From contig NW_026921094.1 of the NCBI RefSeq assembly GCF_032062105.1, forward strand, positions 1 to 64,000: a stretch of 64,000 nt of DNA, written 5' to 3'. Source of the stretch: Saccostrea cucullata (lineage: Eukaryota). Below the pieces are notes generated by a model, which was given only the letters and a program-made list of their open reading frames with translations, did not search any database and was not told the origin of the DNA. Positions 2,652 to 64,000 of the stretch are shown piece by piece. The translations under genes and the position numbers were made by a program. The first letter of the stretch is position 1, and every line of letters starts with the position of its first letter.

Positions 2652-4111
2652 TTAAAAGTGAAGATTAAACATATGTTTATATTTGAAAACTTTGACAAGT
2701 CCTCTCGTATTCCCCACCCACAAATTGGATTTGTTCAGTGTTAATGCGGTTGGAAATTGCACTTCACCCCCTGTCAGCAATAACTTTAAGAATCTCCCAG
2801 AAGGACTCAGTAAATGGATCCGATGATTTTTTGCGTCGGTAACAAGTATGTTACAATAGGAATCACATACCACGTCAAACGGATCAAAGTTCTCCTTCGG
2901 GTGGTTGTCAGTCAAGTTACATCCATGATATACACACTTTTTCTTACCAGATGCAGACAAAATCGTCATAGAATTAATAACCCAGTCTACAACACATATG
3001 TCGCTGTTACCATTCTGTGTAATGCGTCTCGGGAAGCTAAAAGTATCTCCATATAAGAATCATAAACACCGATCACCTGTTAGGGTCATATGTCTTATGA
3101 GACTTGTAGAAGTACTCAGGAAACAAGAGTACTCTGTCAGGGCGACCAGAAGACCACCATCCAACGACTCACAGATTCCTAGTGGTTCTAAATCGTCTGT
3201 ATTTGCGATAACAGAGACAGATCCTGAAGGAAATAGTTGGTAATTACCCCCAGGTAGGATAGTTCTCAATAGCAGTAAAAAACCTCACCATTCTTACATA
3301 CACATATATCACAAAGATTTATCATGTATTCTTGTCTATTCCTCCCTTTTATGTTAATTTGATTTAAAGAGTCTGATGAAAAAGACTGGATATAACAAGT
3401 GTCTTCACTACAAACCTCATGTGTACGTACTGGATTTTCTCCATTTTGAAGAGATCCTACTTCACCAGCAATGGCATCAATTGACCAAGTTTGATGCAAG
3501 TCATCAAACAATTTTCCTCTATCGTATTCTAAAGGATATTCAATGTCTTTAATATCAGACTGTAACTGTTTTTCAGAATTTTCAAATTGTCGATCAGGTG
3601 GAAATCTGATATATTTCTGCTGTTGTTCTCAATTAATTCTATGGTGTCAACAAGCTGGTATTTTTTCTTGTCCATCTGAGATTTCAGAGATTTTATTTGT
3701 TCGTTTGTTTTGCTTAAGTGGTTTTTTCAGGTTTTTTTCCATTGTTTTTCTTCATTTCTGTTAGCCTGCAAATGAATTTTCAAAATGCTTCTGTAAAACT
3801 CTGAATTTTTTATCAAACTCAACTTCATTATCCTTTTCCTGTGTTAATTTTTTCTCCTTTTTCTCCTCAAACTTCGGTATGTGTTTCTCCTTTATCTCTG
3901 TTAGGTACGTTTGGAGTTCTTTCCTTCTTTGAACAGCTACATTAGCTAGAGTTTCCCAGTTGTGTTTCTTGTGCTTGGATTTTGCACACTTGGAACAAAT
4001 GAATTCATCACAATCCTAACAGAACATATCAATTCGTTTGTAATGTTTGTCACAAGTTGGAATGTGTTGTTGAGGAGAGCCTAACGCAGATTCGGGTGTG
4101 TTGGTCGCCAT
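2652..4111 (-). pseudogene. B-box/coiled-coil/NHL-like propeller gene, subfamily alpha (3' end gamma-like); disrupted
   Basis: Starts MATNTPESALGSPQQHIPTCDKH at 4111. In-frame TAG in the B-box (~4016-4018) and several frameshifts. C-terminus has FDPFDVVCDSYCNILVTD...LWVGNTRGLVKVF. Confidence 0.9.
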
Positions 4112-4332
4112 TACTAGTTGTATTGACTTCCCATATCCTTATAACGATGGTTGGCGATACGATTCACTAGTTTGTTTGAATTGCGTTGAAAAAGCTTTTA
4201 ATTTTTTATGAATCGCGAATGAGAAGAAAAATCAATAATATGGATTTAAAACATACATGAAGTTATTAAAAGCCTAAATAAACAGGAGCAAACCCTCTTT
4301 CAATTAATCATCCATGAAAACTTGAAAAGAAT

Positions 4333-4334
<2 letters not shown>

Positions 4335-4367
<33 letters not shown>
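4335..4367. repeat. (CT)n microsatellite upstream of alpha gene
   Basis: Direct reading; the homologous position is also CT-rich at 20467 and ~35737. Confidence 0.95.
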
Positions 4368-4370
<3 letters not shown>

Positions 4371-7380: not shown

Positions 7381-8008
7381 AATAAGTTCCATTGTTTTGT
7401 AGCATCAGGTACGAATGAGTTTCTAAATAGTTCTAATCTACACCTTGGAACAATAAAATCTAGTTTGTTACGGGTCTTTTACTTATCATGAATTATGAGT
7501 GATAAGTTCAAGACGAGTCACCCGTGGGTATCCGACGATGACATATGTAATGATTTTTCGTTTGCCAAGATCTCAGCAATAAACTGTTAAAGTTAAAGCA
7601 ATAGTCCTTTCGGATGGAACCTTAAAAATCAAACATGATAAAGAACCCTTACTGTTCAGTACCGTGATGGCGAGTACAGGTTGACATTTGAAGCCCTTCC
7701 TCGGCATATGATGTTTTCTCGAATAAGATGTAAAAAATATTATGATCAGTTCTTCCTCGTAGATATGTTTTGCTCTATATTTATAATATAACTAAATACT
7801 AATATGATCAGTTTTTGGTTTTGATAAAATAGTGTCGCCATTGTGATAATTTTGTTGACATATTACAGACAGTTATTACTAACCTGTTCTTGTGACCTTG
7901 CCCTTTGGATATCACATGAATGTACTGTTATTTGATATTACATAAATTTTAATTTCATGATTTCTTTTACATAGATCGTTTAAAATTACAACACGTATAG
8001 TATCATCT

Positions 8009-9959
8009 CTAAGACACCTGGTAAACAGAGCATTGTTTGCCTAAACCTAACAACAATATCTTCTCTCCAGCTGGATGAAGTATAATGTTATAAGAATCGG
8101 TCATGTCACTATCTGCTGGATCAATGACTCTGCTCTCGACGAATCCATGTTTAAACTGTTTAAGTTTAGATGATCTATTGCAAACCAAGATGTTATCTTC
8201 TAAGTCAAATGAGAGTCCTCTAAAATTTTGATCGCAAGGACTCTTACAAATCTCTTTGTCATTCTGATCTACAATTATTACCATCCCATCTCTAAAACAA
8301 TGTGTATCTGACACCAAAGACGACGACACAAAGGGCGCATCTCCATGCTGTTTGTATGGTGAACTATGGTTGATGCAGAAGTCCAAAGAACAAATAAATC
8401 TTGTAGAACGATTGGCAGCAAATACTGCTGTTGGCCCATGAGAAATCGCCAACATGGGTTGTTTCAAGTGAATAGTTTTAAGTTTTGTAAATGTTATAGA
8501 TTTTGTGACATCAATCCGATAATGGTTGATAAAACTTTCAAAAGAAACATAAAATTCATCCATGCTCAAACCGGAGTGACAGAGGTCGTACGGTTTCTGC
8601 TGAAAAATCTCTGTGTGAACACATTCTCCAGTGGAACCACTAATGTCGAAAATCTTCAGCGACCGTTGACTTGTCTGAGATAATATTGTGATTCTGTCAC
8701 TGACAAACAAACCATAATGAGCCGTTTCTGATAAATTTTTAATCTGGGATAATTTCGTTAGGTTTACTTTCATCCAGTCTTTGTGGGTATAGACTAATGA
8801 ACTCCTTAGTAATTTTTCTACTTTCCAAGATTGTTCTTTAGACAATACCACGTCTTCAAATTCTTTTGAATTCGAAATTTGACTAAGAAAGTTCAAGTTG
8901 TCTTGTTTGTAATCTTTGGGAAAATTCCAAATTTGTAAAGACTTTAAACGACAGATGTGGTCAGACATTTGATTTTGCAACTTAAGATTCGTAATAAACA
9001 GTTGTTTTGCTGACCCACTCTTTAACACTGATTGTAGTATTGTTCTTGCCTCATGTATTGTAGTGGAAAACCGTTTCAACTCATCATAAGCTACTTCAAT
9101 GTTTCCAATGGAATCTGCATGCATCTGTTCAAATCGTTTTAACCAATTTGTATGTGAATTGTCCAAAAGTAATTTGATTTCTTCAACTTTATCTTCAGTG
9201 GTCATACATATTTCTTGCTTCTTAATATTGAGTTCGGCTTTTAGATTTAATTTTTCTAACAACATGTCTTCAACATCTTTTTCAAAAGCAATATATTTGG
9301 AAACAATGTTTTGAATGTGATCTCTGACAATTGCCAGAGCTGTATCTTCAACTGTATCTACTTTCTTGAACGATTTATGCTGTTTGACATGACAGACGCT
9401 GCAACATAGCTGCTGGTGGCCGTGGCAAAAAACATCGAGTATCTTTCCTTTGCGCAAGAGACATGGCTCCTCTATCTCGATTTCACTGTTCACCTCCTTG
9501 ATGTTCGCAAGGTTTATAATTTCATGATCCTGTAGACTTGGAACAAGTCTATGAAATGATTTACAATCTTCACAAATAGCTTCCATACATATCTTGCACC
9601 AGTGCCTCGCAGGTATCGTTTTCTCAAAACATACAGTTTTTATTTTCATCTTGCACAGGATCTACTGACAAAGTCAGAACAAGTTTGTTCATAGGTAATT
9701 CTACTGCCCATTCTTCACTTGAAATGTTCTTCCTGGGAGCGTCGACATATCTACGACAAACGGGACATTCGATCGATTTAACCGTGTTGGTTTCCTTATT
9801 TGCTGCCGTACTTGAAATGTAAGTCTGAATACACGGCTCACAGAATGTGTGATAACACGGCAAATACTTCGGTTTTCTTACCTCCTCTAGGCATATTGGA
9901 CAGTGGTATTTATTCCTTTCAATGTTAGCAACAGAGGTTTCGGTTTTTGACTCAGCCAT
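8009..9959 (-). pseudogene. TRIM (RING-Bbox-Bbox-CC-propeller), frameshifted paralog of 36391-38394
   Basis: RING CPICLEE..CYHTFCEPC..CPVC in 9624-9959. An 11-bp deletion at ~9626 relative to 38046-38060 shifts the frame. The rest is open as 8009-9649. Confidence 0.9.
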
Positions 9960-10243
9960 TCAATGGAAAGATGGATATCTGGCCAGCCCCACTGTCTCTC
10001 TTTCCGTTTAAAACTGATAACTATGGAACGTTGATGGTGTTAAAAGTAAATGGGCACGGACACGATTTTATTTTGTTGGTGTGTTTTAGTCCTGTGCGAA
10101 ACGGGAGTGAAGTAATTTATATGGCTGGACCTAAACCGAATCTGGGACCCCTGGCCTGAATTCTTTTGTCCAATTGAGATTTTGCACCGTTAAATTAGTC
10201 GTTTGCTTTACGCAGGTTGATTCTAAGTGTGTTTCTTTGTTGC

Positions 10244-10605
10244 ATCTCTTCATTTCTGTGAGACTACTTATCACTTCATCAAAAAGTTTATGCAAAATTC
10301 GAACACCACAATCAAAATGAGTTTCATTATCCTTTTTCTGTGCTGATATTTCCTTCTTTTTCTCCACAAATTCTGGTATGTCATGCTCCTTTATGTCCGC
10401 TAGGTAAGTAAAAATTGCTCCACTTCTTTAGCTAGCTACGCTAGCTAGTGTGTCCCAGTTGTAATCCTAATGGTCTGGTTTTGCAGACTTAGAGCAAATT
10501 AATCCATCACAATCTTCACAGAACATATGACAGAACGTTCTCTATGTTTGTTACAAGTTGTTCTTGAGGAGACCCAACAGGAGATTCGGGTGGGTTAGTC
10601 GCCAT
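10244..10605 (-). pseudogene. 5' fragment (B-box and start of coiled coil) of a gamma-like gene, directly upstream of the TRIM
   Basis: MATNPPESPVGSPQE start, degenerate B-box, EHDIPEFVEKK...LHKLFDEVI; truncated. Paralog at 43211-43552. Confidence 0.8.
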
Positions 10606-11189
10606 TACAACTCGTGTTGAAATCCCATAGATCTTCCTTAAAAATAGTAGGCGATACGATTTACTGGTTTGTTTGTATAGCGTTTAAAAGGTCGAGACCA
10701 CTACCATATATGGAAGGCAATTTTCATCACGTGACGATATCTTCGTCACACCCGTTCGCCAATCAAATGAATGAGTCTGAAAGCATGACACTCTACTACG
10801 TGTTTACGATTCAAGCGCGACACGTGGTTTTCGTCAGTTTCTGCATAATATTCACTTCGTCACCGGAAAAACCGTAGATCTTCATGAAAAATATGCCTAC
10901 GTGTAAGTCTGTGTGATTCTCACGGCAATAATTTACTCAAAACTTATAAACATTCCTTATATTTACATTTTACATGTTTGGAAGCACCAAAAATATACTC
11001 AATATTAATTTTGAATTTCTCGCTGCCCTATATCGTAAAACTTTTACTAAAGTCGCTGTAGCCTTATTGTGACGTCACATTAACGCACGTTCCTTATTGT
11101 ATATTTCTACACGTGAGTATACACGAAAATGGTTTTCAAATCAATTTTACAGTTGGCTCAGTAAAAAAACACAGCGAATGTAAATATTT

Positions 11190-11760
11190 AAGTATGGATA
11201 GCATACAAAATATCAGAAATTTTTGGTATGCCATAGCAGTAACGGAAAATGAACAGTAATAGAGCCTAAAGGATTTCTAAAAAATCAGATAAAAATCTGC
11301 GACCGTGTCAGAAAACTAAGATCAGGTGACTAGGAGGAGTGACCTGTCCCTGTTGACCATGACTCTCTTCGTGAGCCCTATCAATTGATTAGGAAGTTGA
11401 TTTTTGTAGTCAATTTTAGTAGATGAATAAGGGCTGAAAAATCGGTATAAATCAGGTATTTAATACGATTGTTTATATCCGTAAACAAAGTCATTATAAC
11501 GGTCATTATATCGACCACAGAATGTAAGAAATTCTGATTCTAAAGCCGCCCTTAACGTCCCTTTAACGTCAACTTTTCTGTCAGAAGCCTGTCTTGGCTT
11601 AAACATTTATCGTAGTTTGACTGTGCCCTTGAATATAGAAAATAAGTTGGGAGACAAATCCACCCTGTATAGGTGATAGTAGAATATCACAACATAATTA
11701 AAAAAAACATTACAGTGGAAGAGCTGAAATCTTCTCGTTTATCATGCTTTTCAGTTATTA
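11190..11760 (-). mobile_element. Highly decayed Penelope-like RT/3' end remnant (paralogous copy ~46905-47450)
   Basis: Degenerate match to the gatcaggtg..ggaggagtga..tatcgaccatagaa..tcgtttatc pattern of the better copies at 26.0 and 32.1 kb. Confidence 0.55.
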
Positions 11761-12297
11761 GTTGACCCTAATCGCCTACAGTTAGTAAAACAAAAAGAAA
11801 CACATGTAGAAGACTGGTGTCTTTTATTTCAAATTCACTAGGATACATCAAGTTGACGTATGAATGAAAGTAAGTACATACATTGTTAATTGATTATATA
11901 ATTATATTTTGTCGATAACCGAATGCCGTGCTGAAGACCACAGAAACTGTAGCGCTTTCTTCTCAAATAGATGTTTCTGAATAAATTCACCACCATAGCA
12001 ATATACTGGTATAATCAGGTCGGCTTATACAAGATCACATTTAGATCACATCTGAATCCCAACAGCTTTTTAGAAGATCTTGTCAATGAAAACTCATTTC
12101 ATGTCAACTTCAGAGTTTTTGTATGTGTTAAACCAGAGTGGTTCTTTACGAAAAACAATGTTGAAGACCAATCACAGATGTTAAAAATTCCGAGTTTATT
12201 TCAATGAAAAAGTACTTGTCCAAGTTAAATAAAGTGTAAAGACGGACTCTTCAATAAATTTCTAGAATATCTTAATATCAAAATATCTTAGATATGT

Positions 12298-13766
12298 TTA
12301 AATGTCAAGATTAAACATATGTTTGCATCTGAAAACTTTGACCAGTCCGCTGGTGTTTCCCACCCACAGTGTAGACTTGTAGAGAGATAGTGAGGTCGGA
12401 AAATTCAGAGTCAGCAAAAATTTTACAAATGTTCCAGAAACACTCAGCAGATGTATCTTGTGATTCTTTGCGTCGGAAACAAGGATGTTACAGAGAGAGT
12501 CACACACTACGTCATATGGATCAAAATTCTCTCCCGTGTCTTTCATATTTTGTCCAGTATAGATAGATTTAATAAAACCTGATGAAGTTATAATGAACAG
12601 ACTACCGGTGGAAACTGTCCAGTTTACAACACAAATATCATGGTTACCATTCTGCATGACTCGCCGTGGGTAAATGATCGGTTGTTTGTGGTCTTGAAAC
12701 TTGTATTCGTGTTTTATCTCACCTGTCAACGTCAGCTGCAACAATGGAGGGAAACAATAACAGTAGTAACGTTCACAAGAACAGTATGGTCTGGAAAATT
12801 CGAGGTTACTGTGTATAAGTGTAACTAGCAGATCACCCGTTATTGACTGACAAATTCCAAGTGGTATTTGTTGATACTTGTTAAAGACTTTAGAAACGGA
12901 TCCCGACGTGGATAGACGATAGATGGCTTTGTTCTCATTGTCAGTAAAATATACGACGCCATCAATACAAACACATATATCAGAAATATTGAACATGAAC
13001 GATTGTTGAATCGCACCTTGTGTGTTGATTTGATGCGTGTCTTCTGAAGCTGCCTGAATGTAGCAATAATTTTCATCGAATGCTTAAAGAATTCTTGTTG
13101 GATTATTCTTATATTGAAATGATATTGTTTCATCGGCAACTAACTCTACAGACATGGTTTCCCGCAAACAATCGTGGAGTGTTTCTTTTTTATAATCCAT
13201 AAGCCATTCAGATTTCTTTATTTCGTTGTATTTCTGTCGCCACAATCGGACATTGTCCAACAAGCTGTAATCAGACATAGTGGCGTTGTTACTTTCGATA
13301 AAACCTACTTCTTCAACAAGTTGGTTTAACTTCTTCGCTATTTTTTTACCTTCTGCTTCTGCGTTCCATAGATTGTCATTCACTGTTTCCTCATTCTTCT
13401 TCTTGATTTCTAGCAGCCTATTTATGATTTGATCGTAATGTATCTGCAAAGTTTTAATGTCAGAATCATGAAGATTTTTATTTTCTTCTATCTTTTTTTT
13501 TTTAACTCCATACGTTCTGTAAATAACTTTGAGGAATCCCTGTTGATAGTGAGTTTCGATTTTTCCAGCAGTTTTTTCCTCATTTCGCCTGCTGCAGTAG
13601 CCAAAGTCTCCCAGTTATGATCTTTGTGTTCTGTTTTAGCACACTTGGAACAAATAAATTCATCACAATCCTCACAGAATATATCTATACGCACGCCGTG
13701 TTTGTCACAAGTTGGAATATGTTCTTGCGGAGAACCTTCTATGCATTGCGATTTGTTTGTCGCCAT
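12298..13766 (-). pseudogene. B-box/CC/propeller gene, subfamily beta (Cys-rich loop); disrupted
   Basis: Three consecutive ORF pieces. T11 run at 13493-13503 (T6 in paralog) and GAA>TAA at 13084. Carries the RPYCSCERYYCYCFPP loop. Confidence 0.9.
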
Positions 13767-15212
13767 TTTTACCTTGTGTGAAACTGTTGAATACTTTAGC
13801 TAACATTAAAAGCTGTCGATAGGATTCAGTGAAATCATTTCAGTTGTGAAAGCATTAAGAATTATGTCTGTATACGCCGTATAAGATTTGCAAGTTAAAA
13901 TACAACCCCTTTGTATGTTTTGATGTGTTTGGTTACCACTAGAACATTTTAATGAATTTACATATGCGCTGTCAACAATCAATTTAATGGTTGGTTGCAT
14001 TTAGTGCCAATGCTTAAACATCTCTTTTTTTACTATCTGATCTACCATTAAATTTCAATCGAAAGAAATGATTTAAAAGTGATATGGGGATTTCAAAAAG
14101 AATAAACGTGTACAAATGATAATGTAACTGCACACGTGTTTACTATTGTTCAGTAAAAGGAATCATTCTGCCTTAAAATGAAAGCGTATAGGGAGGGGAA
14201 AATCCCGCTCTCAGACAAGATATTTCTCGATTCAAAACGTTCATTAAAAAGTTTTGAAAATAAATCAGCAATTAGGATTATGATTTTTCCCTTATTTATC
14301 AATAAATAATCTGTTTTCAGTTTTGTTTTTGAGGATATCTGCTCCTCAGCTAGGAATAATTTTTAATCTTAATTTTTTTTTTCTTTTATATCTGAGAACT
14401 AAGATTGAAACTGAAATCTTTTCGTGTCATAGTAAGTTTTGTTTACGATAACTGATGCTACTCTTTTGCAGGGCAAAATGATATGTTTTGGTGAAATATA
14501 ACGCAAAGGCAATTGTTTGATATATGTCAATTTTAAAACTATATATCAACAATTATTTCCTGAATATCAAAATAATAATTTAATTTAAAAATGGCAAAAT
14601 ATGCATGTATAATATCAAATTTTCAATTAGAAGTATAAGCATCAGCATATTGATTTAATTTTAAAATATTCTGATTTGATTTTCACTAAATGAAATCTGT
14701 AATAATGATCTTTGAAGAAATACCATGGTTTACTTTTACACATTTACTGAGACATTACTTGAGAGTTCACAGACATTATTGTAAGCATTTTTAATCGTTT
14801 TTGTGTTGCGTTTATGGACTTTTGAGCTTCAATATTTTTCGTTATCTTCAGTAGATATGCATTTTGTAACAATTCAGCTGGAGAATGTGTATGGTACTGG
14901 TTAACATTGGTGAATGTTTTCTTATTATACTTAAAATTGATAATTATAATGTCAAATTATTGCTGCATTTAAATCAAGTGAATCATTGAAAAAATTCGAA
15001 TAATATGACTGTAGTAGTGTACTATAAAGCAGAGATGACATGCTTAGGAATTGCGATTCAAAGAAGGGAAGAAATTTAAAATACGAACCTACTTTTGTAA
15101 CACATTTATCTAAAAGGACAATTAAATATTTCAAAAAAGAATTTAAAAACAATATGATTGTCATTCGGGGCTGGACACTTTGACCATTCATAAAGCTTTT
15201 CTACCGGTATAT

Positions 15213-16458
15213 TTAAACGTGAAGATTAAACATACTAGTATGTTTGCATCTAAAAACTTTGACATTTCCCTTTGTATTTCCCACCAACAATCTGGATTTG
15301 TACAGGGATAGTGAGGTTGGAAATTGAACTTCACTCTCTGTCAGCAAATATTTCAACAATTTCCCAGATGGACTAAGTAAATGGATGCGATGATATTTCT
15401 CGTCGCTAACAAGGATGTTACAGTAGGAGTCACATGCCACGTCATACGGATCAAAGTTCTCCATGGAGTAGTAGTCAGGGTTTTCGTCTGTCAAGATACG
15501 TCCGTGATACACAAACTTAACCTGACCAGAAGAAGACATTATGACCAGATTTCCTTGAGGAAATATCCAGTTCACAAAACAGATGTCAGAGTTACCATTC
15601 TGTTTGAGCCGTGCTGGATAAATTAAGTGATATCCCCCCTCTATATATTCGTGATCATGATTAGATATGAAAGCACCTGTTAAAGTCAGGCGTCTCACTA
15701 GACATGAGGCAGGGTCAAAAAAGTGAGTATCCGGGGGGAATTTCACAATATCCACTGCTAAGGTGACTAACAAACCACCATCAACTGCCTGACAGATTCG
15801 TAATGGTAAAAATTTCTTTGTATCCGCGATGACAGAGACTGATCCTGAAGGAGAGAGACACACATCAAAGGGATTTATCGTGAGCTTTCTTTTCTCGGTC
15901 CCTCGTATGCTAATTTGATTCACGTACTCGGATGTATGGGACTGGATATAACTAATATCATCACCACATCCCTCCAGTATACGTATTGGTTGATCTCCGT
16001 ATTGAAACAATCCTACATCATCAGGAAAGTTTTCTTTAAAATATCAAATTTTTTTCCTCCATCAGCATTGCGAAGGAAAGTCAAGGTTCTGTATGTCATA
16101 TTGTAGTTGTTCTAGAGTTCAATAACGTTTTCAACTAGAATGAGATCGGACATGCTTCCACTGTTTTTCTTAATATATTATTCCAAGATGCTAAAAAAGC
16201 TTGGTTTTGTCGTCTAAATGAGACTTTACACCCTTTATTTGTTCGTTTGCTTCATGCAAGTTACTTTTCAGTGCCTTTTCAGTGTATTTCTTTATTTTTG
16301 TGAGCCTTCTAATTGCTTCATCGAAATGTTTATGCAAATTCCAACATCACAATTAAAATGATTTTTGTTGTCTTTTTCATATTTTAAAATTTTCTCCTTT
16401 TTCTTCCCAAACTCTTGTATAACTTCCTCCTTTTTATTCGCTAGGTATGTTACATCTC
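15213..16458 (-). pseudogene. B-box/CC/propeller gene, subfamily gamma; 5'-truncated
   Basis: ORF 15213-16010 is homologous to 51540-53027 with an internal in-frame deletion. Coiled-coil region is frameshifted, and the B-box is replaced by SINE-like sequence from ~16460. Confidence 0.85.
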
Positions 16459-19235: not shown

Positions 19236-20455
19236 TTAAACTTGACTAAACATATATTTGTATCTGAAAACTTTAACAAGTCCTTTTGTATTTCCTACCC
19301 ACAATTTAGATTTGTACAGTGATAATGCGGTTGGAAATTCCATTTCACCTTTTGTAAGCAAAAACTTCAATAATTTCCCAGAAGAACTTAGTAAGTGGAT
19401 CCTGTGATTTTTTGCATCAGTTACAAGGATGTTACAGTAGGAATCACACGCTACGTCATACGGATCAAAGTTCTCAATCGGTCTGTAGAAAGGGTTGTCT
19501 TCTGTCAAGTTATATCCACGATATGTATACTTTATTTGACCAGATGAAGACAAAGCTAAAAAGTATATTTCCATCAGAATCATAAACGCCGATCTCACTT
19601 TTGACGTCACCTGATAGTGTCATATGTCTTACAAGACTTGTAGAAGGCTGCATGAAATGAGAATAATCTGTCAAGGCGACCAGAAGACCACCATCCACCG
19701 ACTCACAGATTCCTAGTGGTTCTAAATCTCCTGTATTTGCGATAATAGAGACAGATCCCGAAGAAAATAGTTGGTAAATACCCCATGTAGGATAGTTCTC
19801 ATTAACAGTGAAAAACACTTCACCATTCTTACAGACATAGATATCACAAAGATTTATCATGTATTCTTGTTTATTACTCCCTTCTATGTTAATTTCATTT
19901 AAAGAGTCTAATAAAAAAGACTGGATATAACAAGTGTCTTCACCACAAACCTCAAGTGTACGTACAGGATTTTCTCCATTTTGAAGAAATCCTACTTCAT
20001 CAGCAATGGCATCCATTGACCAAGTTTGACGCAAGTCATCAAACAATTTTCCTCCATCGTATTCTAAAGGATCTTTAATATTTTTAATATCAGACCGTAA
20101 CTGTTTCAGAATTTTCAAGTTGTCGATCAGGTGGAAATCTGACATATTTCTGCTGTTGTTCTCGATGAATTCTATGGTGTCAACAAGCTGGGATTTTTTC
20201 TTGTCCATCTGAGATTTCAGAGATTTTATTTGTTCGTTTGTTTTGCTCAAGTGGTTTTTCAGTGTATTTTCATGGCTTTTCTTGATTTCTGTCAACCTGT
20301 TCATCACTTCATCAAAATATTTATGTAAGACTCTAATATCATTCTCAAACTGAATTCCATTATCATTTTCCTTTGTTAATATTTTCTCCCTTTTCTCCTT
20401 AAACTCCGGTATCTCATGCTCCTTTATGTCCGCAAGGTACGTCTGGATTCCCCTC
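19236..20455 (-). pseudogene. B-box/CC/propeller gene, subfamily alpha; B-box deleted, internal frameshifting deletion
   Basis: ORFs 19510-20307 and 19236-19610. The QNGNSDIC segment is missing, and the 5' end abuts the (CT)n tract. Confidence 0.85.
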
Positions 20456-20464
20456 CTTTTACAT

Positions 20465-29090: not shown

Positions 29091-29109
29091 ACCTTATCTA
29101 TGTGTATGA

Positions 29110-31900: not shown

Positions 31901-32096
31901 AGATATTATTTTAACGAAACTGCTGCAATTGCGATGTATTCAATTGCTATTTTCTAGATAGTATTATCGTTATCTAGCCTTTTCTTGTGGTCTTGTCCTT
32001 TAGAAGACCCAGATACAAGAATAAGATATCACATGCCTGTGCTGTTTTTGATATTATATAATTTTAATTTTTGATGTCTTTAACATGGAATGTTTA

Positions 32097-32965: not shown

Positions 32966-32984
32966 AAACTAGTAAAGTATGAAT

Positions 32985-51539: not shown

Positions 51540-53027
51540 TTAAACGTGAAGATTAAACATATGTTTACATCTAAAAACTTTCACAAGTCCTCTTGTATTT
51601 CCCACCCACAATTTGGATTTGTACAGGGATAGTGAGGTTGGAAATTTCACTTCTCTCTCTGTCAGCAAAAACTTCAAAAATTTCCCAGAAGGACTCAGTA
51701 AATGGATCCGATGACTTTTTGCGTCGGTAATAAGGATGTTACAATAGGAGTCACATGCCACGTCATACGGATCAAAATTCTCCATCGGGTGGTAGTCAGG
51801 GTTGTCGTCTGTCAAGTTGCGTCCGCGATACACAAACTTAACCTGACCAGAAGAAGACATTACGACCAGAATACCTCTAGGAAATGCCCAGTTAACTATC
51901 ACTATGTCAGAGTTACCATTCTGGGTGAGGCGTGCTGGATAAAATAATTGAAACCCCTCTTCCGTATATGCATACCGACGTATTATATCACCTGTTAAAG
52001 TCAGGTGTTTTACAATACATGGAGAAGGATAACCGAATTCAGAATACACGGGGATTTCTAATCCTGCCATTAAGGATACTAACAAACCACCATCAAGAGA
52101 CTGACAGATTCCTAATGGTAGAAGGCCTGTATTTGCGATAACAGAAACTGATCCTGAAGGTAAGAGTTGACAAATGGTTTTATGCTCATTATCAGTAAAA
52201 AACACTTTACCATCCTTACAAACACAGACATCAAAGGGATTTATCGTGAACTTTCTTTTCTCGGTCCCTCGTATGCTAATTTGATTCACGTACTCTGATG
52301 TATGGGACTGGATATAACTAACATTATCACCACAATCCTCCAGTATACGTATGGGTTGATCTCCGTATTGAAACAATCCTACTTCATCAGCAAAAACGTC
52401 AATTGAAAAAGTTTCCTGTAACATATCAAAGATTTTTTCTCCATCGTATGGCGAAGGAAATTTAATGTCTTCTATGTCAGAGCGTAGTTGTTCGAACGTT
52501 TTATAGTTTTCCACAAGATTGTAATCGGACATGGTTCCACTGCTTTTCTCAATATGTTCTAAGATGTCAACAAGCTGGGCATTCTTGGCTAATCGAGGCT
52601 CTACACTCTTAAATTGTTCCTTTGTTTTACGCATGTTGGCTTTCAGTATTTCTTCATTGCTATTCTTGATTTTTGTAAGTCTGTTTATCACTTCATCAAA
52701 ATGTTTATGCAAAATTCCAACATCATAATTAAAATGATTTTCATCATCCCTTTTCTGTGTAAATATTTCCTCACTTTTCTCCTCAAACTCCGGTATCTCA
52801 TGCTCCTTTATGTCCGCTAGATATGTTAGAAGACCCCTCCTTCTCTGACTAGCCGCATTAGCTAGAGTTTCCCAGTTGTGATCCTTATGCTTTGATTTTG
52901 CACACTTGGAACAAATGGATTCATCACAATCTTCACAGAACATATCAATACGTTTGGTATGTTTGTCACAAGTTGGAATGTGTTCCTGGGGAGAGCCTAC
53001 AACAGATTGGGGTTTGTTGGTAGCCAT
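51540..53027 (-). CDS. Intact RING-less B-box/coiled-coil/NHL-like beta-propeller protein, 495 aa (subfamily gamma)
   Basis: B-box2 CDKH..CEDCDESICSKC..H..H, coiled coil, and NHL-like repeats (PLGIC, PARLTQNGNSDI, DPYDVACDSYCNILITD..HRIHLL, FPTSL). Confidence 0.92.
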   Translation of the reverse strand: MATNKPQSVVGSPQEHIPTCDKHTKRIDMFCEDCDESICSKCAKSKHKDHNWETLANAASQRRRGLLTYLADIKEHEIPEFEEKSEEIFTQKRDDENHFNYDVGILHKHFDEVINRLTKIKNSNEEILKANMRKTKEQFKSVEPRLAKNAQLVDILEHIEKSSGTMSDYNLVENYKTFEQLRSDIEDIKFPSPYDGEKIFDMLQETFSIDVFADEVGLFQYGDQPIRILEDCGDNVSYIQSHTSEYVNQISIRGTEKRKFTINPFDVCVCKDGKVFFTDNEHKTICQLLPSGSVSVIANTGLLPLGICQSLDGGLLVSLMAGLEIPVYSEFGYPSPCIVKHLTLTGDIIRRYAYTEEGFQLFYPARLTQNGNSDIVIVNWAFPRGILVVMSSSGQVKFVYRGRNLTDDNPDYHPMENFDPYDVACDSYCNILITDAKSHRIHLLSPSGKFLKFLLTEREVKFPTSLSLYKSKLWVGNTRGLVKVFRCKHMFNLHV

Positions 53028-53795: not shown

Positions 53796-55222
53796 TTAAC
53801 TTACGCTATTTTCGTACTTGAAAACTTTAACAAGGCCATTTTCATTTCCCACCCGAAGGTTTGATTTGAACAAAGAAATTGAGGTAGGAAAGTTTACTTC
53901 ATTTTCATTCAGTAAATACTTCAAAATTTCCCCGTCGGGACTCAGTAGATGAATTCGTTCGTTGTATCGGTCGGACACAAGAATGTAACAGAAGGAATCG
54001 CAGACCACATCAAACGGTAAGAAGTTCCACCTCAATGTCTGTCCACTGTAAATCGATCTGATATGTCCAGCAGAAGACAAAATAACAAGGTTTCCTTTAG
54101 TTCTGCTTGTCCAGTTAACAACACAGATGTCCGAGTTACCATTTTGTGCGACTTTGACTGGTAGAGTAAACAGCTTTGTTTTACCGTCAGGAGTGTACTC
54201 ATATTCTCGGATAGTGTCACCAGTTAGGGAAACGTGTCTCACCAAATGCTTGCTGTCTGAATTTGAATTCATCCATTGTGATGTGTTCTCGTTCAGTGTC
54301 ACCAGGAGACCTCCACTTCTTTGACTACATATTCCTCCTGGTAACAGTGGATCTGTTTTAAGGACAACAGAAACAGATCCTGATGGAGAAAGGCGAGCGA
54401 TGGACCTGCTATCAACATCAGTAAAGTATACACTGCTTCTACTCACACATAAGTCATTGGGTTTTATCTTGAATTCTTTCTTCTGCTGGCCTTTTTTATT
54501 GATTAGTTTGGTGTGATCAGAGTAGTGAGATTTTATATATATATCATCGTCAGTGAATGACTCCAACATTATAATAGTGCTATGTTCATACCGGAAAGAT
54601 CCTATTTCATTGGCAATGACCTCATCTGTATCAATAATCTTTCCAACCATACATTTCAGTTGCTTATCACTTATTTTTCCTCTTCTAAATCTCTTTCGCT
54701 GTTCACATCTCTTCATATCAACATCCAAGTCGGACATCAGTTCCGTCAGTTCTTTGTGGTTCTCAACGAAGCTGTAGTCTGACATGGTACCGCTGCTTTC
54801 CTCCATAAATTTTACCAGATCAAGAAGTTGTTTCTTCTTCATTTCTAACTGTGATTTCACGCGATTTATTTGTTCATTTTGTACATCGAGACTGTCTCTA
54901 AGAGTTTGTTCGTGTTTCTTCTTGATTTCTTCGAGCCTCGTTATGATTTCTTCGTGATGCCTCTGCATAAATTGTATATCCACGTCACATCGCCGTTTAC
55001 TTTCTATATTTTGTTGAGATAAATATGAAGGCCTCTCCTTATTTCACCGACTATCATCGCTAATGTTTCCCAGTTATGATTGCTGTGGTCTGATTTTGCA
55101 CACTTGGAACAAATGAATTTGTCACAATCATCACAGAACATATCTATACGTACACTGTGTTCATTACAAACCGGGATGTGTTCCTGAGGCGATCCAACGG
55201 TGTCTTTTGTATCATCAGTCAT
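53796..55222 (-). pseudogene. B-box/CC/propeller gene, subfamily epsilon; frameshifting deletion after the B-box
   Basis: ORF 55004-55222 (B-box) is out of frame with 53796-54983 (395 aa, CC and propeller). Confidence 0.82.
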
Positions 55223-57390: not shown

Positions 57391-58737
57391 CTAGATGTAG
57401 ACTAACGAAAATGTTCCCGTGCGTCTAAATTTAAATACTTTGACAAGTCCTTTAGTATTCCCGACCCAAAGTACAGAACCATGCAATGATATTGAAGTTG
57501 GAAAATCAACATCATTTTCTGTCAGCAAGTATTTGAGGAACTCCCCGTCAGGACTCAAGATATGGATCCTATGGTTAAGCGTATCACTTACAAGAATATT
57601 ACAGTAGGAGTCACACACCACTCCGTTTGGCTTAAAGTATCTTGTCATGTTCTTCCGCCATAGACAGACTTAGTTCGACCAGAGAAAGACAAGAGAACCA
57701 GTTCGCCCGTCTTATCACCTGACTGGTTAAGAACACAGATGTCTCCATTCCCATTCTGAGCAACACTGGTTGGTTGGACAAAAATTCTGGTCTGACCATC
57801 CTCCTGGTATTCATAATCATGGATGAGATCACCATTTATCTTCAGGTGCCTGACCAAACGTCTACTGCATGGTTGTAATTTAAATGTATCTGATAATTCA
57901 TCTGTCAGCGTGACCAGGAGTCCCCCATCCGAAGATAAGCAGATTCCTCCAGGCGTTAAGGGTTTAGTGCTGACTATTGTAGAAAGATATCCGTATTTAT
58001 ACAGACTCGAGATGCATTTGTTCCTATAGTCTGTGTAATAAACACAATCATCAGCTTTTACACACACATCTTTGGCATTTATCCCGGATTCCTATTTCTC
58101 CCTACTTTCTATGTTGACTTTTCTGAATTTTGATATCATGGAACGAATGTAACAAGAATCGTCACTGACTGCCTGAAGAATAAGTATTGATATTTCCATG
58201 TCAATATGAATTTGTTTCAGAAGCATTAATGTCTTGTTTCAGAAGCATTAATGCCTTTTAAATCCAAAGTGTTCAATGATAGATTCCTCGGCGTCATCAT
58301 CAATTCCTCCTCTCATGTATTTCGCTGAATATTCACAATTGTTTAATTTGATATCCAAGTCAGGCATTAATCACATGTATGTGGTTGGTGATCAAGTTGT
58401 AATCCGATTCTATATAATCAACCAATTGTTTTCTTGCCCTGCTGAATTCCTATATCACACTGTTCGATATTTTCCCAATATTCTCAACAGCTACCAGATT
58501 CTTGTAAGCTTCTGGTAGCTTTTCCCTCTTTAACTTTTCAAAGTACTGAAACAAAGCTCTCCTTTTTTGAGCTGCCACCGTCCATCTCCACAGTGTCGTT
58601 CCAGTTGTGGTTTCTGTTATCCGTTTTTGCACACATGAAAAAAAATGGATTCATCACAATCGACACAGAATACATTAATAGGACATCGGTGTTTGTCACA
58701 ATTAAGAATTTTAGTAGTCTTTACTTGCCGCCGCCAT
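57391..58737 (-). pseudogene. Divergent B-box/CC/propeller gene (subfamily zeta), multiply frameshifted
   Basis: CDKHRCPINVFCVDCDES at the 5' end; PGGIC..GGLLVTL..QNGNGDIC..VVCDSYCNILVSD..LWVGN. Confidence 0.85.
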
Positions 58738-60215: not shown

Positions 60216-60976
60216 TTAGACCTATACTTGCCACTCGGGGCTATAGAGCAGTAAAGGATCTTTATCATATCAACACCTACGATGAAATGAAAATTCTGTT
60301 TTTAAGGTGTCTTTTGAAAGACCCGTGCTTTCTACTGCTGGAGACATCTCTAAATGAGTTTAAAATTCTCAATTTGGACGGAAAATATCAAACAATCAAG
60401 AGCAGTCACTTCCTATGTTTAAGTGGTTTGACACGGCGAACAAGAATCGAAGCAAGGTCACTCGATTATAAAGTGAACGCCTTACCACTAGGCAACCACG
60501 ACAGGTCACTATTCACGGCAAAGTCCTTCGACGAAATAAAAAAAGTAATCAACGGACCGAATTAATAAAGAAAAAAGTGAAGATAAATGCAAGATTAAAA
60601 ACACCTACAAACAATGCATCTTCCTGTAATCAACTAGTATATACAATCTTACTTCCACTTAATAAACAAAGAACTATATTTCTGAGTTAAATAATGCCTC
60701 ATTATATCGTCTATCAGTCGGCTTTATCCTTGAAACACACAGAGCTAGTCAAATGAAAATTTTTAGTTTCAGATCTTTCGTAGGAGACCTTGAAACCGAA
60801 GTCCTGTGTCACGGCAAGCTTTGGCACAATGTCAATCCATCTCTGCTCAATGGCCCTAAGTTCCGAGTAAATGTCTATAGTTAAATCCTTTCACTGGTAT
60901 ATGATGTCGTCTCTATGTAACAGATGCTGTATACAGGGTTATTTTCGCCCCGTGTTATTTTCGCCCCTTTATTGGA

Positions 60977-61241
60977 TTGATTGTATACTTTTTAACGTCC
61001 CTCTCCAGAATATTTCACTGATATGGAGACGTCACCATTGCCGGTGAAGGGCTGCAAATTTAGGCCTATGCTCGACACTTACGGCCTTTGAGCAGGGAGG
61101 GATCTTTATCGTGCCACACCCGCTGTGACACGGGGCCTCGATTTATAGGTCTCATCCGAAGGACCGCCCCATTTAGTCGCCTTTTACGACAAGCAAGTAC
61201 TGGGTACTGAGGACCTATTCTAACCCGGATCCCCACGGGGT
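60977..61241 (-). mobile_element. Young SINE-like / non-autonomous retroposon with 13-bp TSD
   Basis: TSD cccctttattgga at 60964-60976 and 61242-61254; short (CAAT) tail; 5' region has gtcgtaaaaggcgactaa. Confidence 0.85.
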
Positions 61242-61965
61242 CCCCTTTATTGGAATATCACTACATAATTAAGAAAACTTGACAATGGAAAACCTGAAAT
61301 CCTCCCGTTTATCACGGTTTATATGTATTTAGTGATTAGTTGATCCTTGTCGTCTATAGTCAGTAAAACACCAAAAATGAATCAGATGTAGAAGACTCTG
61401 TGGTGTCTTTTACTTCAAGTTCACTAAAATATTTCGAGTCGACATATGAATAAAGTATTTATTGTTAATTGATCATATGTCCTCGGTAATCTAAATGCCA
61501 AGACGAATTAAGGCAACAGAAAGTGTAATATTTTCTTCTCACATAGAAGTTTCTGAATAAATTCAGTTTCATAGCAATATAAAATCAGGCCGGCTAATAA
61601 AAGAGCACATTCAGATCACACCTGAATCCCAACAGTTTGTTGGGAGATCTTGTCTCCGATCGTGAAGCCTATAAATATTGTTAATGAGAACCCCGGCATC
61701 CTTTAATTTCAATTTCAGAGTACTTGTATATGTTGAATCAGAGTGGTTTTTTTTTTTAAAAATTGTTGATGACAATTCACAAGATGTTAAAATTTCCGAG
61801 TTCTCTTTTTAATGAAGAAGTAGTTGACAAAGTTTCCATAAGCACAGTTTTTAATTCATCGTGGGGAATGGATGTATAAAGTGTAGAGAAATACTTTTAA
61901 AATCAACATCAAATGATTGACATTTACAGTACAAAATCGCTTCGACCAGAAAAACTGAAATATAA

Positions 61966-63197
61966 TTAAATGGGAATATCAATCATATGTTTGCATCTGA
62001 ACACTTTGACCAGTCCTCTAGTATTCCCTACCCACAGTGTAGACTTGTAGAGCGATAGTGAGGTCAGATATTTCAGTGTCAGCAAAAATTTCACAAATGT
62101 TCCTAACGGACTGAGCAGATGTATCCAGTGGTTCCTTGCATCGGAAACAAGGATGTTGCAGAGAGAGTCACATACTACGTCATAAGGATCAAAAATCTCT
62201 TTTTTGTCTTCCATGATTTGTCCGTTATAGATAGATATGAAAGAACCTGGTGATGATAAAATGAACAGACTACCGCTGGAAACTGTCCAGTTTACAACAC
62301 AAATATCATGGTTACCATTCTGTATGACTCGTCGGGGGTAAGTAATTGGTGGGTCCCTATCTTTTAACTTGTATTCGTGTTTCACCTCGCGTGACAACGC
62401 CAGTTGCAACAATGGAGGTAAACAAAAGCAGTAGTAACGTCCGCAATAGTGGTCTGGACAGGAAAGTCTAAACTCAGAGGGAATCTGTGTGACTAGCAGA
62501 TCACCTATTATTGATTGACAAATTCCAAGTGGTTTTTGTGGATTTGTGTTAATGATGGTGGAAACGGATCCTGACGGGGATAGACAGCAGATGGAGTTAT
62601 TCTCATTGTCAGTAAAATATACAACACCATCATTACAAACACATACTTAAGAAATATTGAACTTAAACGTTCGTTTCCTCTCACCCTGTGTGTTGATTTG
62701 ATGCAATGTCTTCTGAAGCCATTGCCTGAATGTAGTAAGCATCTTCATCGAATGCTTCAAGAATTCTTGTTGGATTATTTTTGTATTGAAATGATGTTGT
62801 TTCATTGGCAACTAATTCAACAGAAATTGTTTTCTGCAAACAATCATTGAGAGGTATTCTTTTAAAACGCATTAGCCATTCAGATTTCTTTATTTTATTG
62901 TAGTGCTGTCGCCACAATTGGACATTGTCTAGCAAACTATAATCAGACATAGTGCCTTTGTTACTTTCGATAAAATCTACTGCATCGCGAAGTTGTTTTA
63001 ACTTCCTACCTATATCCAAAACTTCTGCATTTGCTTTATTCAGATTGTTCTTCATTGCATCTCCATCTGTCCTCTTGATTTCCGTAATCCTGTTTATGAT
63101 TTGATCACAATGTTCCTGCAAGGTTTTAACGTCAGACTCATAAAGAAATTCATATTCTCTTCTCTTGTGTGCTAATTCTACTGATTTATTGAATAAC
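61966..63197 (-). pseudogene. Beta-subfamily gene (diverged), B-box replaced by fusion to an epsilon gene
   Basis: ORFs 62681-63223 and 61966-62412; loop reads SCPDHYCGRYYCFCLPP. Confidence 0.85.
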
Positions 63198-64000
63198 TGT
63201 GTTGTGTTGTCGTTCAATATCACCAGGAGACCTCCACTTCTTTGACTACATATCCCTCCTGGTTAGAGTGGGTCTGTTCTTAGAACAACTGAAACAGATC
63301 CTGACGGAGAGAGGCAAGCGATGGACCTGTTATCAACATCAGTAAAGTATACACTACTTCTACTCACACATAAGTCATTGAGTTTTATCTTGAATTCTTT
63401 TTTTTATTGATTAGTTTGGTGTGATCAAAGGGGTGAGAATTTATATAGATATCATTGTCAGTGAATGACTCCAACATTAGAATAGTGCTATGTCCATACT
63501 GGAAAGATCCTATTTCATTGGCAATGACCTCATCTGTATCAATAATCTTTCCAACCATACATGTAATCAAGAAATGCAAATGTCTGAATCACTTGGTTAA
63601 AGCCCCATTCCACGCATTGTCTCAATGCACACATCTGCCGGTCAAATTCTGCTTCTTCTGGACTCACCCGAATTCCCTTGACCGGCCCAAGTACATACTG
63701 GTTGACGGCATAAGCTGCGTCTCCGTACAAGCAGTACGGCTCACCGTTAAGGGAGTACATGTAGCGTACAAGTTCGTCTCCAAGACCACTTTCCCTAAAA
63801 ACCGCTGCATCGTGCTGTTTACCTTCAAAAGGTCCAGCCAAATTTGCATCTCTTCATAACATCATCCAAGTCAAACATCAGTTCCGTCAGTTCTTTGTGG
63901 TTCTCAACGAAGCTGTAGTCTAACATGGTACCGCTGCTTTCCTCCATAAATTTTACTAGATCAAGAAGTAGTTTCTTCTTCATTTCTAAGTGTGATTTCA
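63198..64000 (-). pseudogene. Epsilon-subfamily gene middle part, running off the window; interrupted
   Basis: Collinear with 54277-54859. Confidence 0.85.
63563..63846 (-). mobile_element. Internal fragment of a PIF/Harbinger-type DDE transposase
   Basis: GPFEGKQHDAAVF..LYGDAAY..FDRQMCALRQCVEWGF (HD, GDxxY and RxxVE motifs); no TIRs. Confidence 0.8.

Follow-up and report, generated by a model that had tools for sequence, protein, structure and literature searches.

TRIM-NHL proteins (TRIM2, TRIM3, TRIM32/Thin, TRIM71/LIN-41, Brat, and Mei-P26) combine a B-box and a coiled coil with a C-terminal six-bladed NHL propeller. Flies, worms, and mammals carry three to five such genes per species, and the ligand face in Brat is the top face of the propeller, made up of the BC and DA loops (PMC4015489). 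The finTRIM/TRIM5-type genes (teleost ftr and primate TRIM5/22) have undergone lineage-specific tandem expansion through birth and death, with many pseudogenes. In this group, positive selection falls mainly on the surface of the recognition domain at the C terminus (PMC2657112). Bivalves have an expanded B-box orthogroup (PMC8382680), and "TRIM" genes make up about one-third of the genes whose basal expression tells virus-resistant families of C. gigas apart from susceptible ones (PMC6971885) and are found among the loci associated with OsHV-1 survival in this species (PMC9437489); they thus figure prominently among genes tied to OsHV-1/POMS resistance. Expanded oyster "TRIM" families are already known, and the family described here belongs to the same broad gene set; in these three papers, "TRIM" genes figure as one category within lists of expression or association results, and the literature searched contained no description of a RING-less B-box/NHL architecture, of a single-exon structure, or of the pattern of top-face selection reported below.

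The window analyzed is a 64,000-nucleotide stretch of a Saccostrea cucullata contig. A tblastn search of the whole window with an intact 495-amino-acid (aa) open reading frame (ORF) as the query yielded 17 copies, some of them fragments, of one family between positions 2658 and 64000. The initial annotation had counted about 20 co-oriented copies; the number is lower, and the common orientation stands, as all 17 lie on the minus strand. They form a tandem cluster of ∼66 kb within a large, oyster-wide family. The last copy in the window (c17) continues to position 64381 of the contig, followed by an additional broken copy on the plus strand (contig positions 66760 to 68217), and five further 10-kb samples of the contig contained no copies of the family. 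The window copies sort into about six subfamilies and are interspersed with genes of a second, RING-bearing type, as follows.

2658..4111, minus strand: c1, broken, subfamily a (recovered by tblastn as two pieces that occupy different frames, one with 5 in-frame stops and the other with 1)
7739..14121: block A, a multi-gene duplication that holds a RING-type gene, an N-terminal fragment, and a subfamily b copy, with its counterpart at 36107 to 50058 (self-BLAST, 84 to 88% nucleotide identity)
8012..9959, minus strand: second copy of the 667-aa RING-type gene, in two reading frames split near 9626 (78 to 90% aa identity in two pieces; 84% nucleotide identity to 36107 to 38690)
10233..10605, minus strand: c2, N-terminal fragment (residues 1 to 126; tblastn, 2 stops)
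12301..13766, minus strand: c3, broken, subfamily b, with a cysteine-rich insertion in loop 1 (1 stop, ∼34 codons missing; 88% nucleotide identity to c12)
15216..16453, minus strand: c4, pseudogene, subfamily d, positional counterpart of c13 (9 in-frame stops, B-box missing)
19245..20460, minus strand: c5, broken, subfamily a (first 61 residues missing; two pieces in different frames, ∼25 codons missing)
23983..25476, minus strand: c6, full length, subfamily e, with TAA at codon 7 followed by 489 open codons (tblastn)
27339..27824, minus strand: c7, C-terminal fragment, subfamily c (tblastn)
29113..30591, minus strand: c8, two frameshifts, subfamily a (three tblastn pieces in three frames, 0 stops)
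31372..31902, minus strand: c9, C-terminal fragment, subfamily c (three pieces, 1 stop)
33650..35504, minus strand: c10, broken into five pieces, subfamily a (2 stops, internal gap at 34548 to 34762)
36394..38394, minus strand: intact 667-aa gene with a RING, two B-boxes, a coiled coil, and a C-terminal beta-propeller (Pfam, homologs, AF2 pLDDT of 85)
43213..43552, minus strand: c11, N-terminal fragment adjoining a retroelement (tblastn)
48264..49710, minus strand: c12, one frameshift and ∼20 codons missing, subfamily b (a 355-aa ORF is left)
51543..53027, minus strand: c13, sole intact copy, 495 aa, subfamily d (ORF list, Pfam B-box and weak NHL, AF2, structure matches)
53817..55219, minus strand: c14, frame-breaking deletion near 55008 to 55014, subfamily c (tblastn)
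57430..58709, minus strand: c15, degraded, subfamily f (at least 3 stops, four pieces)
61969..63247, minus strand: c16, broken, subfamily b (first 59 residues missing, 1 stop)
63215..64000, minus strand: c17, fragments of a further copy (tblastn; to 64381 on the contig)

The 495-aa type, represented by c13, consists of a B-box (residues 18 to 54), a coiled coil (residues 55 to 206), and a six-bladed NHL propeller (residues 207 to 493). The Pfam B-box (PF00643, residues 18 to 51) scored 32.9 bits against a cutoff of 24.1, and its ligands (C20, H23, C31, C34, C39, C42, H47, and H50) are invariant or almost so. In the AF2 model (pLDDT of 84.9), the coiled coil is an unbroken helix from residue 55 to residue 162 with more helices up to residue 206, and 24 strands make up six four-stranded blades. 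The Pfam NHL scores were borderline (18 to 25 bits against a cutoff of 20); the best structural matches were the TRIM-NHL domains of Thin, TRIM3, TRIM2, and Lin41 (Z scores of 26 to 27, root mean square deviation of ∼3 Å over ∼250 residues), and NHL domains including that of Brat matched at Z scores of 25 to 27, with NHL sequence identities of 15 to 22%. Pfam found no RING in the 495-aa type, whose B-box starts at residue 18, and the family consensus also begins with M-A-...-B-box. There was likewise no Pfam match to a filamin/Ig domain, with the propeller beginning at residue 207 directly after the helical region, and none to PRY/SPRY (B30.2). The proposal that these proteins use a propeller rather than PRY-SPRY is thus borne out by both the model and the structure matches, while the description as TRIM-like fits the B-box, coiled coil, and NHL propeller but not the absence of a RING, without which the proteins do not have the full tripartite motif.

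Compared with the TRIM-NHL proteins, the oyster family lacks the RING and the filamin domain (present in TRIM2, TRIM3, and TRIM71), has one B-box only, and has a top face that is net acidic by residue count and fast evolving, whereas that of TRIM-NHL proteins is basic and conserved. Its numbers also differ, with at least 85 near-full-length copies in the same genome (87 scored matches; 3,159 first-look candidates) as opposed to three to five. Compared with finTRIM/TRIM5, the recognition domain is an NHL propeller instead of B30.2/PRY-SPRY, and the lack of a RING means no intrinsic E3 activity. The coding sequence is a single exon, in agreement with the annotation as intronless: 65 of 70 paralog loci fetched from elsewhere in the genome consist of one ORF of ∼490 to 500 codons. 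More than 150 homologs were found across Saccostrea, Magallana, Crassostrea, and Ostrea, and those of Magallana gigas carry the annotations "TRIM2-like" or "TRIM71-like."

The cluster had been pictured as a receptor array, but it is not one of working receptors: c13 alone has an uninterrupted ORF, and the other 16 carry stops, frameshifts, truncations, or an insertion, so that the locus itself contributes almost nothing functional. Its history is one of birth and death, as the initial annotation had proposed for this co-oriented tandem array, with block duplication, divergence into subfamilies, and then decay of nearly all copies here. Self-BLAST revealed multi-gene blocks, including a RING/B-box/propeller gene, duplicated at 80 to 88% nucleotide identity; c2 directly follows the RING-type gene, c11 occupies the same position in the duplicated block, and c8 matches c13 plus c14 at 80% nucleotide identity across 2.85 kb. 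The homologs of the 667-aa gene are oyster "TRIM56/45/33/MID2-like" genes, and its protein model matched COP1 and WD40-type propellers in Foldseek. Copy c6 opens with ATG GCG ACC GGT AAT TCG TAA, and the gene call P0083 (386 aa) begins at an internal Met, while the NCBI model P0010 (LOC134259163) fuses c7 with the N-terminal part of c8. The S. echinata locus holds the same kinds of genes, some likewise broken. Retroelements surround the cluster, with retroelement ORFs at 41613 to 43065, beside c11.

Conserved blocks frame the propeller in the window copies. Among copies whose alignment reaches each block, the PLGIC..GGLLV and QNGN.DIC..W regions are present in 13 each, the FDP.DV.CDS.CNILV region in 11, and LWVGN in 14, and the blocks of several copies differ by one or two substitutions. 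The blocks named in the initial annotation are thus present, and each loop string quoted there was recovered where stated. The three loops between the blocks diverge on this fixed frame as claimed: mean aa identity in the loops versus the remaining propeller is 0.57 versus 0.79 within subfamilies and 0.28 versus 0.54 between them, and the loops are the less identical part in 13 of 13 within-subfamily pairs. They correspond to the BC loop of blade 3, the BC loop of blade 4, and the DA loop from blade 4 to blade 5, and all three lie on the top face by strand topology and the published definition (PMC4015489). Calling them "CDR-like" was an overstatement, as they are subfamily-specific germline sequences; some within-subfamily pairs share the exact loop, such as TDYSEYWEPFTS in the copies at 29113 (c8) and 33650 (c10). 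For the copies at 15213 and 51540 (c4 and c13), loop 1 is indeed the most divergent segment (51% nucleotide identity, compared with 68 to 96% in other propeller segments), but the two are not the recent duplicates they were taken for, with ∼78% nucleotide identity and c4 in the decayed state listed above.

Selection was estimated in 65 intact paralogs of the main clade from the same genome, which are only ∼45% identical to the window copies, with propeller faces assigned by strand topology and one near-identical paralog pair (99.2%) left out. Family-wide, purifying selection acts on the B-box, the coiled coil, and the scaffold of the propeller. The top face (BC and DA loops and the first strand A residues around the central channel) evolves two to four times faster, with a dN/dS of ∼0.8 to 0.9 compared with 0.2 to 0.4 for the bottom face, coiled coil, and B-box. 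Maximum-likelihood omega was highest on the top face (0.92), with values of 0.40 on the bottom face, 0.41 in the coiled coil, and 0.18 in the B-box; in 22 independent paralog pairs (dS of ∼0.25), the two faces had values of 0.77 (top) and 0.36 (bottom). In these pairs, loop 2 exceeded 1 as a class (omega of 1.90; 95% range, 1.15 to 3.44), as the initial annotation had anticipated for all three loops, but loop 1 (0.57) and loop 3 (0.83) did not. Positions at the start of strand A reached 1.88, also with a range above 1.

A subset of top-face sites has a dN/dS well above 1. In a site-wise likelihood test, omega exceeded 1 (P < 0.05) at 14 of 124 top-face sites, 1 of 98 bottom-face sites, and 1 of 44 mid-strand sites (Fisher P = 0.002), placing 14 of the 16 such propeller sites on the putative ligand-binding surface of the C-terminal domain, a likeness to finTRIM/TRIM5. 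Site P values went down to 3 × 10⁻¹², four sites passed Bonferroni correction for 478 sites, and the selected sites recurred when another tree was used and after three divergent sequences had been dropped. The strongest signals come from single residues at the start of strand A and not from the loops: in P364-x-R366, F418-x-P420, and P463-x-R/S465, 12 to 16 different residues occur at x between invariant neighbors, and these hypervariable sites take the same structural position in blades 3 to 6, in gap-free columns. Entropy was 1.89 bits in the BC loops compared with 0.82 to 0.98 in the CD loops, AB loops, and strands, and loop lengths are free to vary across the family. Variability is thus concentrated on the top face as proposed, but the three loops are neither its only nor its strongest sites.

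The reading we hold to be rather probable is that of a decaying tandem cluster of a RING-less B-box/coiled-coil/NHL family whose variable top face serves as a germline-encoded repertoire of intracellular binding specificities. By analogy with TRIM proteins, the oyster proteins would dimerize through the coiled coil, and the variable top face of each would bind a different ligand; non-self or otherwise fast-evolving targets, and with them an immune role, would be the likeliest. Lacking a RING, the proteins would not ubiquitinate by themselves and would act by sequestration or via RING-bearing partners, the RING/B-box/propeller genes scattered through this cluster being candidates for that role. 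A more specific version, which we put forward only tentatively, is that of RING-less sensors whose specificity would come mainly from the BC loops and from a ring of hypervariable single residues around the rim of the central channel (x in the motifs P-x-R, F-x-P, and x-P-x-G, where strand A begins in successive blades), and whose signaling would proceed by B-box/coiled-coil pairing with the co-duplicated RING-bearing RBCC-propeller genes. If true, this would be a propeller-based counterpart of TRIM5/finTRIM in which recognition and ligase activity are divided between two gene families.

Several observations count against a repertoire. The face-averaged top-face dN/dS remains below 1 (0.77 to 0.92), as does loop 1, and c13 shows plain purifying selection against its S. 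echinata relative LOC133186512 (72% identity; dN/dS of 0.23 to 0.47 in all regions, top-face omega of 0.38). Relaxed constraint alone, in which top-face loops are structurally unimportant in fast-turnover, largely redundant or decaying paralogs and no adaptive diversification occurs, would account for the class-wide values below 1, including those of loops 1 and 3, as well as for the freely varying loop lengths and the many pseudogenes in the window. We nevertheless regard it as unlikely. Neutral drift does not produce an omega above 1, as seen at the Bonferroni-surviving sites and, at ∼1.9 in independent pairs, in loop 2 and at the strand A start; variable single residues recur between invariant ones in blades 3 to 6, and paralogs elsewhere keep intact ORFs in 65 of 70 cases, with purifying selection on the remaining protein. 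That the signal stems from gene conversion, from misalignment, or from alleles and paralogs being mixed in an incompletely collapsed assembly appears very improbable. The assembly (1.17 Gb in 23,869 contigs) did contain the 99.2% identical pair, and identity between c13 and c8 is mosaic (B-box, 91%; C terminus, 89%; middle, 60 to 70%), which points to gene conversion that could inflate site tests; however, that pair was excluded, the columns of the top sites are free of gaps and flanked by invariant residues, pairwise estimates made without a tree match the tree-based ones, and the findings persist when the tree and the set of sequences are changed.

Alternatively, the family could consist of endogenous posttranscriptional regulators whose propellers bind RNA, as in Brat, LIN-41, and TRIM71, with paralogs partitioning host or transposon RNA targets instead of sensing pathogens. 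RNA-binding TRIM-NHL domains are the nearest structures solved; on the same face, NHL domains have come to recognize RNA in very different ways (PMC5908797); and retroelements lie around the cluster. A positively charged top surface, however, distinguishes RNA-binding TRIM-NHL domains (PMC4015489), and a crude residue count, as distinct from electrostatics, gave the 65 paralogs a mean top-face net charge of −5.7 (range, −15 to +2), with a few neutral or positive values. We therefore consider RNA regulation quite unlikely, and return to the repertoire of binding specificities as the favored reading.

With respect to expression, no run searched held the window stretch near-identically; two oligo-dT runs from other samples contained just 5 and 11 reads with 90 to 99% identity to the window copies. 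A 1,167-nt contig from an RNA library is ∼96% identical to c14 and has 58 extra bases at the point of its deletion.

With the sole long intact open reading frame (ORF) of the window (positions 51543-53027, 495 aa, termed c13 herein) as the query, tblastn identified 17 copies and fragments of one family, which we number c1 to c17 by window coordinate. The minus strand carries every ORF of ≥150 aa in the whole window. The source contig, free of N runs within the window, comprises 179,650 bases in an assembly of 1.17 Gb and 23,869 contigs. The conserved sequence blocks and the strings of the three variable linkers (loops 1 to 3) that had been quoted in the initial annotation were all found in these copies, most of which can be assigned to subfamilies on the basis of their loops.

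Subfamilies of the window copies, defined by their loops
Subfamily a: c1, c5, c8, c10
Subfamily b: c3, c12, c16 (loop 1 cysteine-rich)
Subfamily c: c7, c9, c14
Subfamily d: c4, c13
Subfamily e: c6
Subfamily f: c15

The loops vary more than the frame that carries them, as had been proposed: loop identity was lower in 13 of 13 within-subfamily pairs and also in the between-subfamily mean (mean identities of loops versus the rest of the propeller, 0.57 versus 0.79 within subfamilies and 0.28 versus 0.54 between them). For the copies starting at 15216 (c4) and 51543 (c13), previously described as recent duplicates that differ most in loop 1, the second part of the description holds (51% nucleotide identity in loop 1 versus 68 to 96% in the other propeller segments); the duplication itself is old, the two copies being ∼78% identical, and c4 contains nine in-frame stops. 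In subfamily b, loop 1 carries a cysteine-rich insertion (..RPYCSCERYYCYCFPP..) at 12740-12795 in c3 and at the same position in c12 (48264-49710) and c16 (61969-63247); the insertion is conserved between c3 and c12 but varies in c16, and could form a small metal- or disulfide-stabilized knob on the top face of the propeller.

The description of the locus as a receptor array was overstated, because most of its members are pseudogenes. Among the 17 window copies, c13 is the only uninterrupted gene; c6 is full length with a TAA as codon 7, frameshifts and no stops are found in c8, c12, and c14, and the other copies have stops or lost ends or are fragments. Assembly error was considered as the main cause of these disruptions and rejected, since, of 70 paralog loci retrieved from other parts of this assembly (the best matches, and thus a selected sample), 65 have intact ORFs of ∼490 to 500 codons and since multiple in-frame stops in several window copies also count against it. 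Exactly at the break in c14 (55008-55014), 58 additional bases are present in ∼96%-identical contigs derived from another sample (an RNA library and a DNA run), and the break is therefore a real frame-breaking deletion or polymorphism that may be lineage specific. The NCBI model LOC134259163 (455 aa), which connects the N-terminal part of c8 (29929-30591) with the C-terminal fragment c7 (27327-27851), ∼2 kb away, appears to be chimeric, combining two pseudogenes. The practical message is that the window is mostly a pseudogene graveyard, in which one existing gene model splices two dead copies together.

In the 495 residues of the c13 protein, Pfam recognized a single B-box and, at a borderline level, an NHL domain, and it gave no RING match. 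An AlphaFold2 (AF2) model based on 91 homologs (pLDDT 84.9) places the B-box at residues 18 to 54 (numbering follows c13 throughout), followed by a long helix (55 to 162) and further helices up to residue 206; residues 207 to 493 form 24 strands arranged in six four-stranded blades, with an N-terminal strand closing the propeller. The top structural matches (Foldseek and VIA-align) were the NHL domains of Thin, TRIM3, TRIM2, Lin41/TRIM71, and Brat, with Z scores of 25 to 27 and a root mean square deviation of ∼3 Å over ∼250 aligned residues. Strand order identifies loops 1 (321 to 336) and 2 (380 to 385) as the BC loops of blades 3 and 4, respectively, and loop 3 (401 to 419) as the DA loop that leads from blade 4 to blade 5. 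When the four strands of a blade are antiparallel, the BC and DA connections emerge at one end and the AB and CD connections at the opposite end; all three variable loops are of the BC or DA type and are thus predicted to share a single face of the propeller. This assignment of faces relies on strand order together with the published definition, by which the top surface of an NHL domain is its BC/DA side, the side that serves as the ligand face of Brat (PMC4015489).

The family extends far beyond the window, with at least 87 scored matches and 3,159 first-look candidates in the same genome and more than 150 homologs across Saccostrea, Magallana, Crassostrea, and Ostrea. Family-wide tests were carried out with the 65 intact ORFs (median pairwise identity, 64%); the selection analysis concerns the main clade of the genome, which is ∼45% identical to the window copies. 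In this set, entropy was highest in the BC loops (1.89 bits) and DA loops (1.28 bits), compared with 0.91 bits in the AB loops, 0.82 in the CD loops, 0.98 in the strands, and 0.81 in the B-box. The BC loops are variable in all six blades, that is, beyond blades 3 and 4.

Class-wise omega values (IQ-TREE, GY94, fixed tree) were 0.92 for the top face, 0.57 for the strands, 0.40 for the bottom face (AB/CD side), 0.41 for the coiled coil, and 0.18 for the B-box; the top face thus averages an omega below 1. A grid-based, site-wise likelihood test in which internal states were summed over (logL −45110.7, versus −45107.9 in IQ-TREE) and which contains no recombination model detected omega >1 at 22 of 478 sites (P < 0.05), 16 of them in the propeller. 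Fourteen of these 16 are located in BC/DA loops or are one of two strand residues adjoining them, giving 14 of 124 sites on the top face, 1 of 98 on the bottom face, and 1 of 44 in mid-strand positions (Fisher P = 0.002). The strongest signals were obtained for sites 365 (P = 3e-12), 305, 419, 303, 464, and 382. Site 382 falls in loop 2, and the other five are found where strand A begins in blades 3 to 6. Sites 365, 419, and 464 are single residues enclosed by invariant positions, and 12 to 16 different amino acids occur at x in the motifs listed here; in the motif x-P304-x-G306, sites 303 and 305 are the residues on either side of P304.

Hypervariable motifs at single sites
P364-x-R366
F418-x-P420
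P463-x-R/S465

The site results held with a nucleotide-based tree and after removal of three divergent sequences. As a tree-free check, 22 independent paralog pairs (dS of ∼0.25 to 0.38) were compared, yielding pairwise dN/dS values of 0.77 for the top face (95% range, 0.67 to 0.87), 0.36 for the bottom face, 0.33 for the coiled coil, and 0.20 for the B-box. The strand-A-start positions, a class defined post hoc from the site results, reached 1.88 (1.51 to 2.36). The emphasis originally placed on the three loops is borne out for loop 2 (1.90; 1.15 to 3.44) and was too strong for loop 1 (0.57) and loop 3 (0.83). Between c13 and its 72%-identical relative in S. echinata, purifying selection was found everywhere, with a top-face omega of 0.38.

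A crude residue count gave a mean top-face net charge of −5.7 (range, −15 to +2), with a spread twice that of the bottom face. Since RNA-binding TRIM-NHL proteins are set apart by a basic top surface (PMC4015489) and the top face here is net acidic by this crude count, RNA is not the obvious ligand for most members. A near-identical stretch of 51000-55300 was present in no public run (maximum word share, 0.15). Reads over this region came from two oligo(dT) RNA runs (5 and 11 reads, 90 to 99% identity), c14 was matched by a 1,167-nt contig from a metatranscriptomic run (∼96% identity), and for c13 the coverage consisted of no more than one 92%-identical DNA contig and a few reads of 90 to 95% identity. 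These reads and contigs stem from other individuals or relatives, and transcription of the window copies is not demonstrated by them.

Bivalves have no adaptive immunity and suffer mass mortalities caused by OsHV-1 and Vibrio. The view of a TRIM-like birth-and-death family with its variability on one propeller face, for which TRIM5 had been cited as a parallel, proved right in outline, and the immune role assigned to it was overstated. finTRIMs are marked out by the combination of expansion and positive selection in the recognition domain (PMC2657112); compared with the PRY-SPRY TRIMs, the propeller described here represents a second structural solution for a diversified TRIM-type repertoire. 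A B-box orthogroup is among the bivalve-specific expansions (PMC8382680), about one-third of the genes that distinguish POMS-resistant from susceptible C. gigas families by basal expression are "TRIM" genes (PMC6971885), and loci associated with OsHV-1 survival include "TRIM" genes (PMC9437489). Resistance screens repeatedly yield "TRIM" genes, but as an undifferentiated category. In a limited literature search, we found no paper on a B-box/NHL family that lacks a RING and has a single coding exon, or on selection at the top face of NHL propellers, and TRIM is not mentioned in Zhang 2015 (PMC4346834) or Takeuchi 2016 (PMC4759782). One large "TRIM" subfamily is now characterized as RING-less, with its coding sequence in one exon and with an NHL propeller that diversifies at defined ligand-face residues, which turns the category into testable hypotheses on the residues that set specificity, the paralogs to assay, and the neighboring RING genes as candidate partners.

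These neighbors encode a 667-aa protein of a separate family that combines a RING and two B-boxes with a coiled coil and a C-terminal propeller, the latter giving matches to COP1 and WD40-type propellers; oyster homologs of this protein are named TRIM56-, TRIM45-, TRIM33-, or MID2-like by the sources. Self-comparison of the window revealed that 7739-14121 and 36107-50058 share 84 to 88% nucleotide identity, each block containing one RING-type gene of 667 aa together with a subfamily-b copy and an N-terminal fragment; the two 667-aa gene copies were duplicated along with the B-box/NHL copies. The second block is broken up by an inserted retroelement.

Neighboring genes and retroelement sequences in the window
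36394-38394, minus strand: 667-aa gene, intact
8012-9959, minus strand: second copy of the 667-aa gene, split into two reading frames near 9626
17076-17189 and 28198-28341: short C-terminal remnants of the 667-aa type
42244-43065: retroelement gag-like ORF with a CCHC zinc knuckle
41613-42587: retroelement reverse-transcriptase ORF
1074-1661 and 32322-33164: further reverse-transcriptase fragments

Between the retroelement and c12, an AT-rich stretch (GC 0.29) contains two arrays of an 83-bp satellite in opposite orientations (44695-45321, 7.5 units; 45687-46451, ∼9 units; 85 to 93% matches). A further pair of segments, 29103-31902 and 51533-54347, is 80% identical at the nucleotide level. Along the gene, nucleotide identity between c13 and c8 forms a mosaic (91% in the B-box, 89% in the last 75 codons, and only 60 to 70% in the middle), as it likewise does between c13 and c4; this pattern suggests gene conversion between copies of different subfamilies.

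Beyond the window, one more broken copy, encoded on the plus strand, occupies contig position 66760-68217, and five further 10-kb samples of the contig contained no family copies; as judged by this partial sampling (six 10-kb samples of the remaining contig), the array ends near 68 kb. The locus of the closest relative, in S. echinata, is built from the same ingredients: a single-stop copy, 667-aa-type remnants, and an intact copy, followed by a vinculin gene. The next-closest relatives of c13 are located on contig C3893 (8342-9742, 91666-92364, and 96410-97861) and include a 489-aa copy that is intact and 63% identical, as well as a fragment with 81% identity; this group is probably a sister cluster.
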